Origin: Pavona decussata
Lineage: Eukaryota
Length of the DNA stretch: 64,000 nt
NCBI GenBank assembly: GCA_977016875.1
Contig: CDRNST010000122.1
Span: 3,844,001 to 3,908,000 of the forward strand
Reading direction: 5' to 3'
Below are positions 5,763-55,829 of the stretch, one piece after another; the first letter of the stretch is position 1, and the number at the start of each line of letters is the position of its first letter. The position numbers and the translations under genes are program-made. A model generated the notes under the pieces. It saw nothing but the letters and a program-made list of their open reading frames with translations. It searched no databases and was not told the origin of the DNA.

Positions 5763-6419
5763 TTATTCTTTCCTGGTCCGTCCCTTACCCTTGGTCTGGT
5801 AGTCTGGTAAGCTCAAGTCTCTCTCAAGTGCATCCCAAAAGTGAGTTTTTTGGGGGAACTTTTCCCAGTGTAAACAATTAACGCCTTCTAAACATTCAGG
5901 TATTTTGCACTCCCTATAAACTATCGGCACAACCTGGTTAGCGGGTTTTCTAATGAGAGATATCTCAAGGTCAAAGATACACCAGTTACTGTCTACGAAA
6001 TCTGGAGATAAGATCAACACTGTGTTCCTACTACGGTCAATCGCCTGATAGATGTTCTCTGTGATTTTCATTCCAGGAATGAAATCCCGAAAGTCGATAA
6101 AGCAGGAGAAGCTGCGCCGACCTTCAAGTTCTGTTAAGAGTTCTTCCATAGCCCAATTTCTGTCTTTACTACTGTAGCAGATGAAGACGTCATGTTTTGC
6201 CTCGTATTCTAAATGAAAAGAAAAACAAAAATATTTTAACATACTACCCAAATATTACATGCGGAGTGTCATCAAAACCACGTTCAAAATAAGCAAGTTC
6301 ATTTTATCAGGGGCCCGAATTAAGTGCTATTTTTACACTGAACTGCTTTCAGCTCTATAAGTTACGTGTACATTTGTGTTTACAAAGATTTCACAGGAAA
6401 GGTAAGATCAATTGGCTTG

Positions 6420-6466
<47 letters not shown>

Positions 6467-28300: not shown

Positions 28301-31300
28301 CTGGTCACGCACGCGTTGTGTTACGTAACTCTTTTGGCTCCCTGAATCGAAGATTAATCTGGCTTCAATTCCGTTCGAGGCTGTTGTACTTCCATTTTGT
28401 ATCAGGGCTAAGGCGGTCTGAAGTAACACTGAATCTTGCGATCCCACGTGAAAGGTACTTGCTTGCACAGGAGGAGGCTGTCGGTTTGTGGCATTTCCGT
28501 TGTCGCTGTTGTTTTGGCCATTTACCCTGGTTTCCTTTTTCATGACTCTTTCTGGAGTTTCGATTTCGCACAGGCTAACATGATGCCTACCAGAACATTT
28601 AAAACAGGCAATTTTCGATTGGCAATCTTTTGCAAGGTGGCTTCTTCTAAGGCAAACGAAGCACCGTCCCTGCTTTTTCAGAGATTCTCTTCTTGCGGCT
28701 TTGCTAGTCACGACGTGACAGCTCGCTGTCGGGTGTAGCTGTTTACAAAATGTACAATGCGTTGTACTTGAAGGCGTGTTTTCTGTGAACAAGATGCCTG
28801 CTACACTGGCATTACGCGTGATGCTGGGGCTGATTCATTTATTCCAACTGTATGCTTTGCCGATTGATAAGACTATCCTTGCTAGTGGAATAGTTTAAGT
28901 CACGACGATCGCGTTACGTTGTTTCCTTTGTGTTACGCGACTCAGAGTATCACCGGAAATTTTAGCCTCCCACGCAGACGTTCTTAGGGCAGGAACGCGT
29001 GACGAACCCCCAAGAACGTCTGCGTGGGAGGCTACGGAAAATTTGTGAAATTCCATTGCGATAACGTAAGCTTCTCAATGACCTCTTTTCTGTCTGCAAT
29101 CAATCGCGTCGTGGTCTAAGACTGTCAAACAAAGCACGATTCCTTCACTAAGAACTCACCAATTTCCACCGTTTTACGTGTCGGGTGCTTCTTAGAAGTT
29201 ATTCTTTCGATTTGCCGCTTCAAAATGGTGAAATTTCCCTTTGAAAACGGCACACTTGAGTCCAGAACATGTTAAAACAATATGGCGCGACTTAATCCGT
29301 CTTTAATAAATATATCAAATGATGCATTGACGTCACACAGGTAGGGGTGAGTGGGTCCCCTCCCTCACGATATAAGCGACAAGAATGGATTTTGATTGGC
29401 CTGCTGTTGTTGAAGACAATCAGAACAATACATCCCGAGTAGGAGAGGGGAGAGTTTAATGAACAAGATGCCTGCTATACTGGCATTACGCGAGATGCTG
29501 GGGCTGATTCATTTATTCCAACTGTATGCTTCGCCGATTGATAAAACTATCCTTGCTAATGGAATAGTTTGAGTCACGACGATCGCGTTACGTTGTTTTC
29601 CGTGTGTTACGCGACTCAGACTATCAGCGGAAATTTGTCAAATTCCATTACGATAACGTAAGCTTCTCAATGACCTCTTTTCAGTCTCGCGTCGTGGTCT
29701 AAGACTGTCAAACAAAGCACGATTCCTTCACTAAGAACTCACCAATTTCCACCGTTTTACGTGTCGGGTGCTTCTTAGAAGTTATTCTTTCGATTTGCCG
29801 CTTCAAAATGGTGAAATTTCCCTTTGAAAACGGCACACTTGAGTCCAGAACATGTTAAAACAATATGGCGCGACTTAATCCGTCTTTAATAAATATATCA
29901 AATGATGCATTGACGTCACACAGGTAGGGGTGAGTGGGTCCCCTCCCTCACGATATAAGCGACAAGAATGGATTTTGATTGGCCTGCTTTTGTTGAAGAC
30001 AATCAAAACAATACATCCCGAGTAGGAGAGGGGAGAGTTTAATGAATAAATTAATGTACCGATTTGTGTATACGACGAAGAAAAAAAAAAAGAAATCGAC
30101 CCGTTTTAAGACACGGTATGCCCCCTCAGGGCATCCCGCGTAATAATGCCGACGCGCTTGTTGGCTCTCGTTTTCCACTCCTTCGATCATCTGGACTGTA
30201 TGATTTCTCTTTCGTGGTAAGGGCCGGTACTCCCTCACATCTTTCCCTGTTCTCGACTTCGTTTCGCAGAAGTTGCAGTATTTCAGTAAGATTCCATTCT
30301 CCATCCTTGATTTCACGGCCCACCAAAAGGCGAATATCGTCGGGAATTTTGGACATCAGTACGGGAACCAAAAAACTTCCATACGTTTCTGCAGGCACAT
30401 CTAAAGCTTGTAATCCCCTTACGTGGGCTTCGATTTTGTCGAAGGTTTCTCTCAGTTTTCGAGTGTCCGATGTGTTTTGTAAAGGCGTCAACTTTAGGAA
30501 GCTATCCATGTGACTACTTATAATTACTTGCTTGTTCCCGAATCGCTTCGTTAGAAGGTCAATGGCTGCGCTGTAATTATCACTCGTTAAAGGTAGACCT
30601 GCGATTGTAGAGGCTGCAGATCCGTGTAAAAGGCTTCTTAAGTAGTTGAATTTATCGATCTTGTGTAATTCGGGATTTTCGTGGACTGCGCTCCTAAAGC
30701 TATCCCAAAAGGTAAGCCACTGGCTTGGATCCCCATAGAAATTCTTCAAAGTAAGTCGAGGCAGTTTCGCGTGCTTGTTTGCAATGGCTGGGCCTTGTGA
30801 TGCTTGGCTTGGCGACGGAGCACCATGCTCATGGCTGTCTTTTCGTGACAACACGCTTTCAATTTCGACAACAATCTCCAATATCTTTTCACTGAAGACG
30901 CCAGCTTCTTCGATCTCTTCTTCAATCGCTTTCTCGTCATCTAGGGTGTCTAAAATATCGGCGTCCAAACTATGAATAGTTTCTAGTCGATCTTGAAGCG
31001 ACATTTTCAGTTGTTTCAGCTTGTTTTCTAAAGACGGATCGTAGTTTTTTACGATTTCTTCTGCTTTGGCCATCAGCTTCGTTGCGTACGAGCGATGCCC
31101 CTGTCGTGATTTTTTCTTCTTCGTCATGTTATCCAATGTTATCCGGCTCGAAGGACCATGTAATGAAAACTTCCTTTAATGGCTAATTCGTTCCTCCGTT
31201 AAGGCTCAAAATCTAAGGCTTCACAATATATCACTATATCCGATCTCTTAACTCCGCGCGCTTCTCTATTGCTATTCGAGTCCTGTTTCGCAATGTCCTT

Positions 31301-31549
31301 TCTTATGTCTAGGCCAATCTTAAAACAATCAAAATACATGGATCGGATATCACAAAGTAATTAAGGTTCGCTTTTCACATCCGGTTGGTTAACAATTGAT
31401 CAAGTTCAAAGTTCTTCATTAACTATTTCAATCTTTCGTCAAGTTCCAGTTCAAAGTTCATTTTCTCGACATCTATGAGCTTGCTTCAAAATAAGCCTGT
31501 TGCAATACTAACCTCTTCCTTCCTCTTCATTTGGAGGAGCGTCCGCCAT
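19323..31549 (-). CDS. STAND NB-ARC-like ATPase with C-terminal TPRs (NLR-like); last exon not located
   Basis: Exons 31549-31513 (MADAPPNEEEGR), 23417-23361, 22587-22558, 21891-20191 and 19707-19323 are joined by GT-AG phase-1 introns. Motifs: pre-P-loop LPGPVPHFVNR, Walker A GAVGMGKT, Walker B VVLLDNCE, LLVTS, GxP (CSGIPHAL), TPRs (LGDHHPFTATILDSLSRNY, HMDTAKSLYDLAMVY). The last exon found ends at a phase-2 donor CG|GTAAG. The two large exons are certain; the three small 5' exons are less so. Confidence 0.8.
23894..24206 (-). repeat. 3' LTR of the BEL/Pao element
   Basis: Direct repeat of 31159-31471, adjacent to the polypurine tract. Confidence 0.95.
24227..28789 (-). CDS. BEL/Pao polyprotein, 3' part (zinc knuckles, protease, RT, RNase H, integrase)
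   Basis: Three Cys/His knuckles (CTFC, CFVC, CFKC), protease FDSGS, RT ADIQKAF...FGMNCSPF...YVDD, RNase H FGDAS...TIPRLEL...WTDS, integrase H-H-C-C, DFAG, SDNA, WWGGYYE. Open for 1520 codons. Confidence 0.95.
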   Translation of the reverse strand, partial: FTENTPSSTTHCTFCKQLHPTASCHVVTSKAARRESLKKQGRCFVCLRRSHLAKDCQSKIACFKCSGRHHVSLCEIETPERVMKKETRVNGQNNSDNGNATNRQPPPVQASTFHVGSQDSVLLQTALALIQNGSTTASNGIEARLIFDSGSQKSYVTQRVRDQLSLPTISKESLLIKTFGTDVTGQPTACEKIKVSVGNTNKLSSKEIECFVVPTICAPIGNQEIDTAIKRFAYLRDIELADGVHGNEELEIDLLIGADFMWSFFTGATKRGENGEGPVASCTILGWVLSGPVSGESKNPRLSSVNFVSTHVLKVAAEPKHESPRTEELLCRLWDLDSIGIRDKETVHETFLENISFANGRYCVTLPLKEKRDLLPDNYDLSLVRLNSLMRRLRKEPSILREYNQVFEDQLRENIIELVDEKEELSRDIHYLPHQAVLRSDALTTKLRVVFDASAKVKPSCPSLNDCVYTGPPLTAGIADILMRFRAHKVGLVADIQKAFLNIEVDEQQRDLMRFLWVDDINSEDPNVLIYRFCRVIFGMNCSPFLLNATLKHHVTKYYENDPDLARNTLEGLYVDDWTSGGEDDDEAYALYNTTNACFAAGGFNLRKWASNKKEVIEKITLDRLKKERLKEQESPSNEDQSFAKLCVGGLDEIDPTKEHKVLGTNWNLEEDIFIMKLNKVVEFARNLEPTKRNILRIAAKLFDPLGLISPVMVGLRMLLQKLCLNKCEWDSPIPPHQQHYLQKWMNDMEKVSQISVSRYYFPGERKKVKSASLHGFGDASKEAYCAVVYLCIETEEGYRTSLVASKTRVTPSSPMTIPRLELLAALILARLVATAREALSQVINIEEVFCWTDSITVFYWIQANKDFKQFVQNRVDEIQKLTDVKSWRHCPGVENPADVGSRGCPASELVSNSLWWEGPAWLKGSSNHYPKSGVSNEEDLSEECKKEVKPMKRSPEIVTNTSSLVNLTKEPTPNKPVKFTDDIDCERFSDVMKLFRVTAFCLKFIKNLKSSRNQKREPQNTEPSLTAEEIDEAKCLWIRSLQETMKNEKNLDNLKLQLGLFNDEDNVIKSKGRLGNAQLDAATRYPILLPRRHHVTKLIVEACHRKVKHGGVKETLTELRSEYWIPKGRQLVKKILHHCVVCRKLEGRPYTPPPSGDLPESRVTATSAFTHVGVDFAGPLFVKTGSGAAKQMKKVYICLFTCATSRALHLELTPDLSSEAFIRCLRRFTARRGTPASITSDNAKTFKKANRDLVQLFQDKKTQDYAANHGIAWHFILEKAPWWGGYYERMVQLVKRSLRKVLGKAQLTYEELLTVLTEVEGVLNSRPLTYIYPEVTDNPLTPSHLVIGRRLATLPDNDQLSDDEEPVSKLQRRALYLSKLLEHFWKRWKNEYLVGLREFHRCSSKGVQDREIKTGDVVLVHEDSSRSNWRLGEVIEVIESSDGYKRGALLRVTSKKGKHSRMRRPIQKLFPLEVNTGNTPAQEQVGIVQEPNPRSETSRPPRRAAAATADVIRRLVDQQ
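28790..30143 (-). mobile_element. Helentron-type partial tandem dimer inserted in BEL gag
   Basis: A full copy (~29464-30143) plus a 5'-truncated copy (~28790-29463) of the 12341-13020 element. Removing it restores the frame ...SASAL-FTENT..., with no TSD. Confidence 0.8.
28963..29034. mobile_element. 72-bp MITE nested in the Helentron-type copy
   Basis: 23-bp TIR TAGCCTCCCACGCAGACGTTCTT with an imperfect 9-bp TSD CGGAAATTT. Absent from the two sister copies. Confidence 0.85.
30144..31127 (-). CDS. BEL/Pao gag, 5' part (interrupted)
   Basis: ATG at 31127. KLPRLTLKNFYGDPSQWLTFWDSF...DKFNYLRSLL...NYSAAIDLLTKRFG is typical BEL gag (DUF1759-like). Confidence 0.92.
31141..31158 (-). other. Primer binding site complementary to the tRNA-Tyr 3' end
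   Basis: The plus strand reads ATCCGGCTCGAAGGACCA, matching the animal tRNA-Tyr 3' terminus including CCA, directly adjacent to the 5' LTR. Confidence 0.85.
31159..31471 (-). repeat. 5' LTR of the BEL/Pao element
   Basis: Direct repeat of 23894-24206, followed by TSD TCTAT. Confidence 0.95.
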
Positions 31550-42374: not shown

Positions 42375-52515
<10,141 letters not shown>

Positions 52516-54959: not shown

Positions 54960-55065
54960 AAGAAACACAAATACCAAACATGTCGCTCATCAATCACTTC
55001 TTGTTTGTTCTGATCCGTGTGATTGCAGTCTGTTTCCTCGGGCGTCAGGCTTTTTGTTATAAAAG
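54960..55065 (+). promoter_or_regulatory. Histone H1 promoter: H1/AC box and TATA box
   Basis: AAGAAACACAAA (core AAACACA at 54963-54969) lies ~95 nt upstream of TATAAAAG (55058-55065). Confidence 0.65.
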
Positions 55066-55160
55066 TGGCGCGTAAAAAAACCTCGTTATTGCATCGCGAA
55101 AGTCTTTTTTCCCGAAGCAAATTTGTTTTCTATCGATCGTTTTTGAGTCAGTTGTGGATT

Positions 55161-55829
55161 ATGTCTGCTGTTGCAAGGCCAAAGTCAAGATCACGTTCCA
55201 GATCTAAATCTCGTTCCAGATCAAGATCCCGATCAAGGTCGCGATCGAAGAGTCCCGGTGCGCGAAAGATGGCGAAGAGTCGAAAACCGAGAGCAAAGAA
55301 GTCTACTGCTGCTGCCCATCCGCCGTACATCGCCATGGTTTCTCAAGCGATAACAGCAATGAAAGATAGAGGCGGCTCGTCCAGGCAAGCCATTGAAAAG
55401 TACATCAAAGCGAACTTCAAAGTAACGGGTGACATCTCGACTCATCTGAGGATGGCCTTGAAAAGAGGAGTTGCCTCAGGGAAGCTAATGCATACCAAAG
55501 GAACCGGTGCCTCGGGATCCTTCAAGGTCAACAAGGCTGCAGTCACACCAAAGAAAAAGTCAAAGAAGAAGCCAGCTGCTAAAAAGCCCAGGAAGAAGGC
55601 CGCGACGCCCAAGAAGAAAGCAGCAAAGAAAACCGGCGCCAAGAAAGCTACGAAGAAGAAGTCCGCGGCGAAAAAGAAGGGCAAGTCACCGGCAAAGAAG
55701 AAGAAGAAGACTACCAAGAAACCTAAAGCTAAAACGGCTGCAAAGAAGCGAACAAAGAGCCCGAAGACACGAGCTACGCCAAAAAAGAAGACAGCCAAGA
55801 AACCCAAAGCAGCGGCCAAGAAGAAGTAA
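55161..55829 (+). CDS. H1: Histone H1 family protein with N-terminal SR repeat (protamine-like/sperm H1 candidate), 222 aa, intronless
   Basis: Globular domain [12 protein letters not shown]...[13 protein letters not shown]...[11 protein letters not shown] and a Lys/Ala-rich tail with three TPKK motifs. The first ATG after the TATA box is at 55161. Confidence 0.93.

Follow-up and report, generated by a model that had tools for sequence, protein, structure and literature searches.

We analysed a 64,000-nt stretch of the genome of the coral Pavona decussata (assembly GCA_977016875.1, 602 Mb; contig CDRNST010000122.1, positions 3,844,001-3,908,000), hereafter the window, which has ~40% G+C and contains no N. 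On its minus strand lie two genes. The first encodes a predicted STAND nucleoside triphosphatase (NTPase) with NB-ARC and TPR regions and apparently no output domain; the second, the TIR gene, is a transcribed gene in which a TRADD-N-like module (hereafter the module) precedes two TIR domains. We consider it probable that these are two separate neighbouring genes in a fast-evolving cluster shaped by duplication and by the shuffling of exons. Among named species, those with the closest relatives of the proteins in the window are the scleractinian corals Oculina patagonica and Desmophyllum pertusum. A first-pass annotation of this DNA had described two adjacent, co-oriented genes, and their arrangement agrees with that description: both are on the minus strand, 6.4 kb apart, in the order STAND exon 1 (31549-31513), a BEL/Pao retrotransposon (31471-23894), the other STAND exons (23417-18051), the 6.4-kb spacer and the TIR gene (11624-5763). 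Searches, structure predictions and family scans were all run exon by exon; the spliced proteins were never joined.

The STAND gene can be read as six coding exons with a total length of 2280 nt (759 codons and a stop). All exon borders are AG/GT, and all phases match. The exons, in the order of transcription, are as follows.

31513-31549, minus strand: coding exon 1, with ATG at 31549 followed by 12 codons and one further nucleotide, and ending at a GTTAGT donor; in phase with exon 2.
23361-23417, minus strand: coding exon 2 (57 nt), with AG/GT borders and matching phase; kept in relatives with an in-frame 6-nt difference.
22900-22941, minus strand: coding exon 3 (42 nt), aligning with positions 211-252 of the related-coral contig L038 and with residues 16-38 of its protein P0015; borders and phase fit.
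20191-21891, minus strand: coding exon 4, containing the P-loop NTPase, the NB-ARC region, a helical region and the first TPR, as assigned by Pfam and by alignment to L038.
19323-19707, minus strand: coding exon 5, containing TPRs, as assigned by Pfam and aligned to L038; a possible stop overlaps a consensus donor, CG/GTAAGT.
18051-18108, minus strand: terminal coding exon of 18 codons and a stop; acceptor and phase fit, and the acceptor is kept in relatives.

Three of these exons are fixed by L038, a spliced metatranscriptome contig from a related coral, since it aligns to 22942-22898, 21894-20193 and 19709-19322; the protein it encodes, P0015, is 67% identical. The model as a whole is based on sequence, phase and conservation. 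The peptide of exon 2 resembles the N-terminus of P0015, and the peptide of the terminal exon resembles the C-termini of P0015, P0030 and P0071. The terminal exon (18108-18051) takes the donor that is overlapped by the stop after the TPR exon. At the other end of the gene, the ATG at 31549, which coincides with the end coordinate given in the first-pass annotation, has a stop in frame seven codons before it. Three related-coral copies (L033, L044 and L045) retain this ATG, its donor and the small exons, and the exon 1 block is 96% identical to relatives, compared with 79-90% for its flanks. The transcript of a more distant relative has the same effector-less STAND layout, with several in-frame stops in its 5′ untranslated region (UTR). 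Coral homologues of exon 4 reach 88% identity. Two other candidate starts were rejected. For the ATG that opens with ‘MENV...’ inside the long NB-ARC open reading frame (ORF), as in the prokaryote-style call P0001, the reason is a strong acceptor at 21892, just upstream of 21891, where homologous transcripts are spliced; an ATG inside exon 2 is missing in two of the three related copies, while the ATG of exon 1 is kept in all three.

Family scans identified in this gene both hallmarks of STAND NTPases, namely a P-loop core with Walker A, Walker B and the ARC helical region, and a C-terminal repeat sensor. The long ORF at 20126-22114 contains a P-loop and a region scoring above the NB-ARC threshold, and the ORF at 19319-19720 consists of TPRs; the motif GMGKT and an hhhhD-type stretch, VVLLDN, are readable. 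Exon 4 matches Pfam NB-ARC (6e-9; 35.9 bits against a cut-off of 23.5), AAA_22 (1e-8), AAA_16 and TPR_12 (4e-4), and exon 5 matches TPR_10 (2e-20) and TPR_12 (1e-18), in line with the NB-ARC-like ATPase and TPRs first reported for this locus. The first-pass annotation had further counted ~45 residues before the NB-ARC and no effector among them. Indeed, the three small 5′ exons amount to 136 nt, which gives exactly 45 residues ahead of the NB-ARC exon, all of them domain-free. An effector exon located further upstream would speak against this count; it was looked for in the window, and neither tblastn with the N-termini of P0030 and P0079 (two module-bearing STAND proteins described below) nor a whole-genome search for module exons detected a second module or death-fold exon upstream of STAND there. 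From the domain-free 45 residues, the upstream stop and the conserved start exon, the STAND protein is therefore predicted to be without an N-terminal death-fold, TIR or enzyme domain. It is one of a large family: we found at least 60 STAND matches in the P. decussata genome, and this list is a lower bound.

The TIR gene is a transcript of its own. It consists of four exons contributing 449, 50, 528 and 443 nt, respectively (1470 nt, or 490 codons).

11176-11700, minus strand: exon 1, encoding the TRADD-N-like module with a Gly/Ala-rich hydrophobic stretch; ATG at 11624 and 5′ UTR to at least 11700, from spliced contigs.
9098-9147, minus strand: exon 2, a 50-nt linker that restores the frame between exons 1 and 3; joints 9147/11176 and 7961/9098 in runs X1 and X4.
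7434-7961, minus strand: exon 3, encoding the first TIR (TIR_2, 6e-17), bounded by spliced joints; nearest structure 4w8g (1.4e-15).
5763-6208, minus strand: exon 4, encoding the second TIR (TIR_2, 1e-21; 4w8g, 5e-23) and the stop; joint 6208/7434 in X1, X4 and X6, with the 3′ UTR extending beyond 5701.

Spliced Logan contigs from the runs of three studies (X1, X4 and X6) contain the joints 11176/9147, 9098/7961 and 7434/6208, all of them GT..AG on the minus strand, and one contig of 2353 nt spans all four exons. These runs were only presumed to be RNA, but contigs from which the introns are missing establish the presence of spliced transcript. A direct joint between the module exon and the first TIR exon was considered and discarded: the phases of the two exons clash, and therefore a small intervening exon of 3n+2 nt was predicted, which was later seen in the contigs as the 50-nt linker. 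In a related coral (L036) the module exon and both TIR exons are open and collinear with those of the window.

These models bear on whether the two genes might in fact be one, with read-through or alternative splicing producing a single STAND-TPR-TRADD-N-TIR-TIR protein. The common strand, the overlap between the stop after the TPR exon and a strong donor, and an X4 contig (contig 16) that extends 112 nt past 11700 are all compatible with such a long gene. We nevertheless regard it as highly improbable: the donor is taken by the conserved terminal STAND exon, which has its own stop, and homologous transcripts end at this exon. On the side of the TIR gene, the transcribed leader contains a stop in frame with the ATG, 16 codons ahead of it, and 20 of the 22 aligned homologues share the Met-Ala with which the module exon starts.

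The second gene had been described as carrying signalling domains and no sensor. Both TIR exons pass the Pfam thresholds, with TIR_2 scores of 62.6 and 78.0 bits (cut-off 28) and TIR scores of 43.1 and 69.1 bits (cut-off 21.3), and no sensor domain accompanies them, which bears out this description. The structure nearest to both is the TIR of Hydra Toll-receptor-related 2 (4w8g), followed by TLR1/2/6, TIRAP and MyD88, with much lower scores for the enzyme-type TIRs of plants and bacteria. Because the nearest TIRs are of the scaffold type and those of the enzyme type score so much lower, the pair more probably has a scaffold role than one in NAD cleavage. At what we take to be the catalytic position, compared by eye, the first TIR has Glu and the second Asp. 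The ratio of nonsynonymous to synonymous substitution rates (dN/dS) is 0.3-0.6 for both genes when they are compared with relatives, and both look constrained.

The TRADD-N label originally given to the first exon of the TIR gene is supported by fold and fails by profile. From an alignment of 22 sequences, AlphaFold produced a model with a predicted local distance difference test (pLDDT) score of 71. When compared by VIA-align with the TRADD-N structure 1f3v_A (1F3V), it gave a Z-score of 11.9 and a root-mean-square deviation of 2.5 A over 112 residues, the next unrelated match having a Z-score of 7.2. Foldseek ranked 1f3v_A third by E-value (4.9e-3) and gave it the highest template modelling score (TM-score) of the listed rows, 0.50. 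In contrast, the curated Pfam profiles TRADD_N and TRADD-like_N do not match the window module exon; two of the 22 module homologues match TRADD-like_N (best E-value 0.0068) and one matches TRADD_N (E-value 0.15), all below threshold. A scan of the module exon against Pfam gave nothing at an E-value of 0.01, and at an E-value of 1 it gave only a below-cut-off match of MrpF_PhaF to the hydrophobic stretch. The predicted structure thus supports membership of the module in the TRADD-N fold.

Two details of the model deserve mention. A ‘PGS’ motif places a Ser (residue 89) between modelled strands 81-87 and 91-97, and Ser is present there in most of the aligned homologues. A Ser at the beta2-beta3 turn is given as characteristic of TRADD-N in a survey of this family (PMC8195603), and from position alone we infer that residue 89 is this Ser. 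The Gly/Ala stretch (residues 42-60; Kyte-Doolittle mean 2.21) connects strand 1 with helix 1 in the model, with pLDDT below 50 at residues 44-52, and is polar in two homologues. The membrane anchor named in the first-pass annotation rests on this hydrophobicity and is putative: the stretch lies inside the modelled fold, where a membrane span would part strand 1 from the sheet.

We identified 20 module exons in the P. decussata genome, and a profile search of 1.84 billion representatives revealed 213 module proteins; a word-index search returned unnamed exon-sized ORFs only. Among the longer proteins the module is fused to very different bodies: to Ig and Death domains in Acropora RefSeq proteins, to an IIGP GTPase or to TPRs in an octocoral, and to AIG1, MACPF and Hint in a protein from a contig; an amphioxus protein is found among them as well. 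It also occurs ahead of STAND-TPR bodies. In the Oculina protein P0030, a module 34% identical to that of the window (E-value 3e-17) precedes a STAND-TPR region 56% identical to the window STAND, and the Logan transcript P0079 combines Pfam TRADD-like_N (3e-8) with STAND and TPRs. The P0030 locus consists of a module exon, a small linker exon and the NB-ARC and TPR exons, with a second module exon 7.6 kb past the gene.

STAND exon 1 of the window matches the start of the module exon at 31 of 39 nucleotides, a score reached by 2 of 300 shuffles. Judged from this similarity, exon 1 looks like a leftover resembling the first 13 codons of the module, and the window gene like a copy that lost the module. 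The adjacency of the two genes would then arise from tandem duplication together with shuffling of the module exon onto varied bodies: in a tandem family of module-STAND-TPR genes, one copy may have lost its module, and the next module exon may now be spliced to TIR exons, an order of events that we infer. For the TIR and NACHT/NB-ARC families of corals, duplication in tandem has been described (PMC10236652). In the P. decussata genome, contig C436 (4133741-4262539) carries five module exons on one strand, three of which are 42,956 bp apart and have identical scores. From the equal spacing and the identical scores, we attribute these three to a recent large tandem duplication.

We then consider whether the two neighbours form a functional pair. 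The first-pass annotation had proposed a split system, in which a module-less STAND sensor stands beside a TRADD-N-like-TIR-TIR adaptor/effector. Under this model the module would dock in trans, as it would in cis in the fused Oculina protein, and oligomerisation of STAND would gather the TIR pairs. In part this proposal stands, in that the anatomy of the two genes is complementary, Oculina has the same module in one protein with a homologous STAND-TPR, and the genes share their orientation across a 6.4-kb spacer. Expression offers a further point in its favour. When words sampled from the NB-ARC and TPR exons were looked up in seven RNA-type runs of the species, a fraction of 0.30-0.34 was present; three of these runs (X1, X4 and X6, with 0.31-0.34) also contain spliced contigs of the TIR gene, so that both genes are probably expressed in the same samples; presence in the same run, however, differs from co-regulation. 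A precedent exists in bacteria, where, according to PMC8195603 (Figure 3G as described in its text), conserved neighbourhoods place a TRADD-N gene beside an AP-ATPase-TPR STAND gene, the two lying side by side as in the coral. Unlike the bacterial pairing, which is conserved across genomes, the coral one mostly failed this test, and the coral genes are spliced and have separate transcripts.

The linkage was examined in related genomes and among paralogous loci. The related coral assembly ERZ26692669 contains three STAND copies. In one of its copies, collinearity with the window extends from STAND to slightly beyond the module exon, which speaks for linkage; this module exon, however, carries a frameshift, and what comes after it is a MAP2K exon instead of TIRs. 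This exon (L034 11796-12110) lies 1.5 kb downstream of the frameshifted module exon and is near-identical to window positions 46037-46396, part of a MAP2K gene located 25 kb upstream of STAND in the window. The arrangement points to a segmental duplication or rearrangement that affected the whole block in that species. An intact module exon of ERZ26692669 (L042) is likely the orthologue of the window module exon, because the DNA that follows it matches, past a transposon insertion, the intron of the window gene. No STAND occurs in the 10 kb upstream of L042, the nearest STAND copies on its contig being 77 kb and 83 kb away. Downstream of the STAND duplicate L045, ~9 kb of sequence contain no module exon; the sequence covered for L044 stops short of the place where one would be expected. 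In a more distant coral, the module genes at L046 and L047 (module with TIR and module with GTPase) have no STAND within 10 kb. In the P. decussata genome itself, where linkage was judged from match coordinates, neither the closest STAND paralogue (C66, 74%) nor the closest TIR paralogue (C91, 53%) has a partner among the recorded matches.

Overall, a conserved adjacency of sensor and effector genes is not kept across paralogous loci or species within 10-kb flanks. The expected microsynteny mostly failed, at L042, L045, L046 and L047, and the only linked related copy has a frameshifted module and no TIRs. Synteny thus speaks mostly against the coupling half of the split-system proposal: linkage is not kept where it can be tested, and the nearest STAND and TIR paralogues are unpaired. 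The fusion argument is weak, as the module is promiscuous and joined to many unrelated domains, and the two proteins have no domain in common through which a like-with-like contact could form. We regard such a pair as doubtful.

A narrower version, in which the module was once part of the sensor itself, can also be put forward. A TRADD-N-like-STAND-TPR ancestor, comparable to the Oculina protein, would have lost its module, and the neighbour would now supply it in trans together with two TIRs, the TRADD-N-like fold serving as the docking element. We judge such a split receptor unlikely.

Several points nevertheless weigh against treating the genes simply as two separate members of a shuffled cluster. 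A module exon located 8-32 kb downstream of STAND on the same strand recurs in one related copy, in Oculina and in two of the three C339 paralogues of P. decussata, where it lies 14 kb and 32 kb downstream; this recurring linkage may represent the next gene of a tandem array. The negative synteny tests are limited to flanks of 10 kb and a few species. A Rosetta-stone reading of the Oculina fusion hints at a functional link between module and STAND. The first two introns of the STAND gene are placed by conservation and phase alone, and the biochemical roles proposed for both genes are drawn from family knowledge. With these points taken into account, we still favour two separate neighbouring genes.

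STAND intron 1 harbours a large insertion in the orientation of the gene itself.

23894-31471, minus strand: intact BEL/Pao retrotransposon of 7.6 kb with long terminal repeats (LTRs), inside STAND intron 1.

Every component expected of a BEL/Pao element is present: LTR ends, target-site duplication, gag, Pao protease, reverse transcriptase and integrase. The LTRs (23894-24206 and 31159-31471) are 313 bp each, differ by one base and have TG..CA ends. The target duplication TCTAT is found at 23889-23893 and 31472-31476. The gag ORF matches DUF1759 (6e-43), and the 1521-residue pol ORF contains Peptidase_A17, RVT_1, rve and DUF5641. Since all three related copies have an empty site, with the equivalents of positions 31472 and 23893 adjoining, the insertion is recent. 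The element also contains an internal duplication of ~580-670 bp between gag and pol (28786-29986).

Such an insertion could have disabled the STAND gene by cutting off or silencing its transcription, leaving a young pseudogene or a gene driven by the LTR without exon 1. The element is indeed very young, as judged from the single difference between its LTRs and its absence from the three related copies. Of the words sampled from the NB-ARC and TPR exons, only about one third is found in RNA-type runs, and the dN/dS of STAND is rather high (0.54-0.59). We find this scenario improbable: none of the six exons is interrupted and every splice site is intact, some STAND words occur in runs proven to hold spliced RNA, and introns often tolerate LTR elements. 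A STAND gene that has kept its coding capacity beside a separate TIR gene remains the reading we prefer.

The interval between the two genes has a different make-up from that of STAND intron 1.

11701-18050: spacer with no recognisable coding domain, including a 680-bp high-copy repeat at ~12341-13020.

None of 10 ORFs from 11.6-19.1 kb, nine of which lie inside the spacer, gave a Pfam match. Apart from the 680-bp repeat, the spacer is collinear with the relative L034 at 82-90% identity. It consists mostly of unique DNA that is conserved in a relative, together with this one repeat. The statement that the genes are separated only by repeats was accordingly loose, right as regards the 680-bp repeat and wrong for most of the spacer; the BEL/Pao element lies in STAND intron 1. 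The 680-bp element (12341-13020) has many copies in the genome that are 98-99% identical and elsewhere often form head-to-tail arrays. It is missing from the same site in the related coral and is therefore a recent insertion here.

Repeats were observed in the introns of the TIR gene as well. The intron between the TIR exons contains a tRNA-Ala(GGC)-like sequence (6412-6486, minus strand) on which contigs from the RNA runs reach depths of thousands and carry a wide variety of flanks, consistent with a tRNA-derived short interspersed element or a multicopy tRNA gene. In intron 1, the segments 9301-9500 and 10101-10500 are high-copy repeats, with contig depths of hundreds to thousands in all four runs and many unrelated flanks. 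Further upstream of STAND, the window contains a MAP2K-like gene at ~52-46 kb, a plus-strand histone H1 gene and a PFKFB-like gene. The histone H1-like ORF (55023-55829, plus strand) has a run of Ser-Arg dipeptides at its N-terminus.

The locus can be compared with several known systems. PMC8195603 describes cnidarian expansions of TRADD-N, with 17-168 proteins of highly variable architecture and links to retrotransposons. The locus resembles them in having the module at the junction with variable immune and death domains, many paralogues, retrotransposons, a Ser at the beta2-beta3 turn, and architectures that differ between close species. It differs from them in that the window module scores below the Pfam thresholds, is not preceded by a DED and has the Gly/Ala stretch between strand 1 and helix 1. 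In the accessible parts of the text and supplement of that survey we found no architecture of TRADD-N followed by TIR-TIR, no hydrophobic stretch, and none of the five RefSeq members of the module family.

The STAND gene shares features with the cnidarian NB-ARC/NACHT repertoire (PMC10236652, citing an Acropora survey): NB-ARC with TPRs, a large tandem family, and some members without an effector. The present case differs from it in that the lack of an effector does not appear to reflect a truncated annotation, given the conserved start exon and the full transcript of a relative with stops in its 5′ UTR. As for the TIR gene, both TIR exons are closest to the TIR class of Hydra Toll-receptor-related proteins, TLRs and MyD88 (4w8g, 1fyv, 7beq), and unlike these proteins it has two tandem TIRs behind a TRADD-N-like module, with neither an ectodomain nor a death domain. 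In plants, paired NLRs such as RRS1/RPS4 form linked sensor and executor genes; both partners are NLRs, which are inherited together and usually share one promoter in a head-to-head arrangement. In contrast, the coral genes lie in tandem, only one of them is a STAND, and the linkage is not kept.

Taking family knowledge as a guide, we propose that the first gene may encode a 759-residue STAND NTPase acting as a nucleotide-driven switch, which would oligomerise when its TPRs bind a ligand and, having no output domain, would have to signal through a partner in trans. The second would be a 490-residue adaptor, with the TRADD-N-like module as a docking or switch element and the paired TIRs seeding TIR-TIR assemblies.

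Because the linkage is not conserved, the case for a new two-gene system is weak. If the split receptor nevertheless proved true, it would, to our knowledge, be the first STAND system of the sensor-plus-helper kind known from animals. Innate-immune repertoires of corals are very large, and signalling by their NLR-like ATPases is poorly understood; the locus adds a predicted STAND sensor without an output domain and an expressed TRADD-N-like/TIR-TIR protein of adaptor type. One N-terminal exon is common to STAND, TIR, Death, GTPase and pore-forming architectures in anthozoans, which supports the module as a common connector of coral immune signalling.

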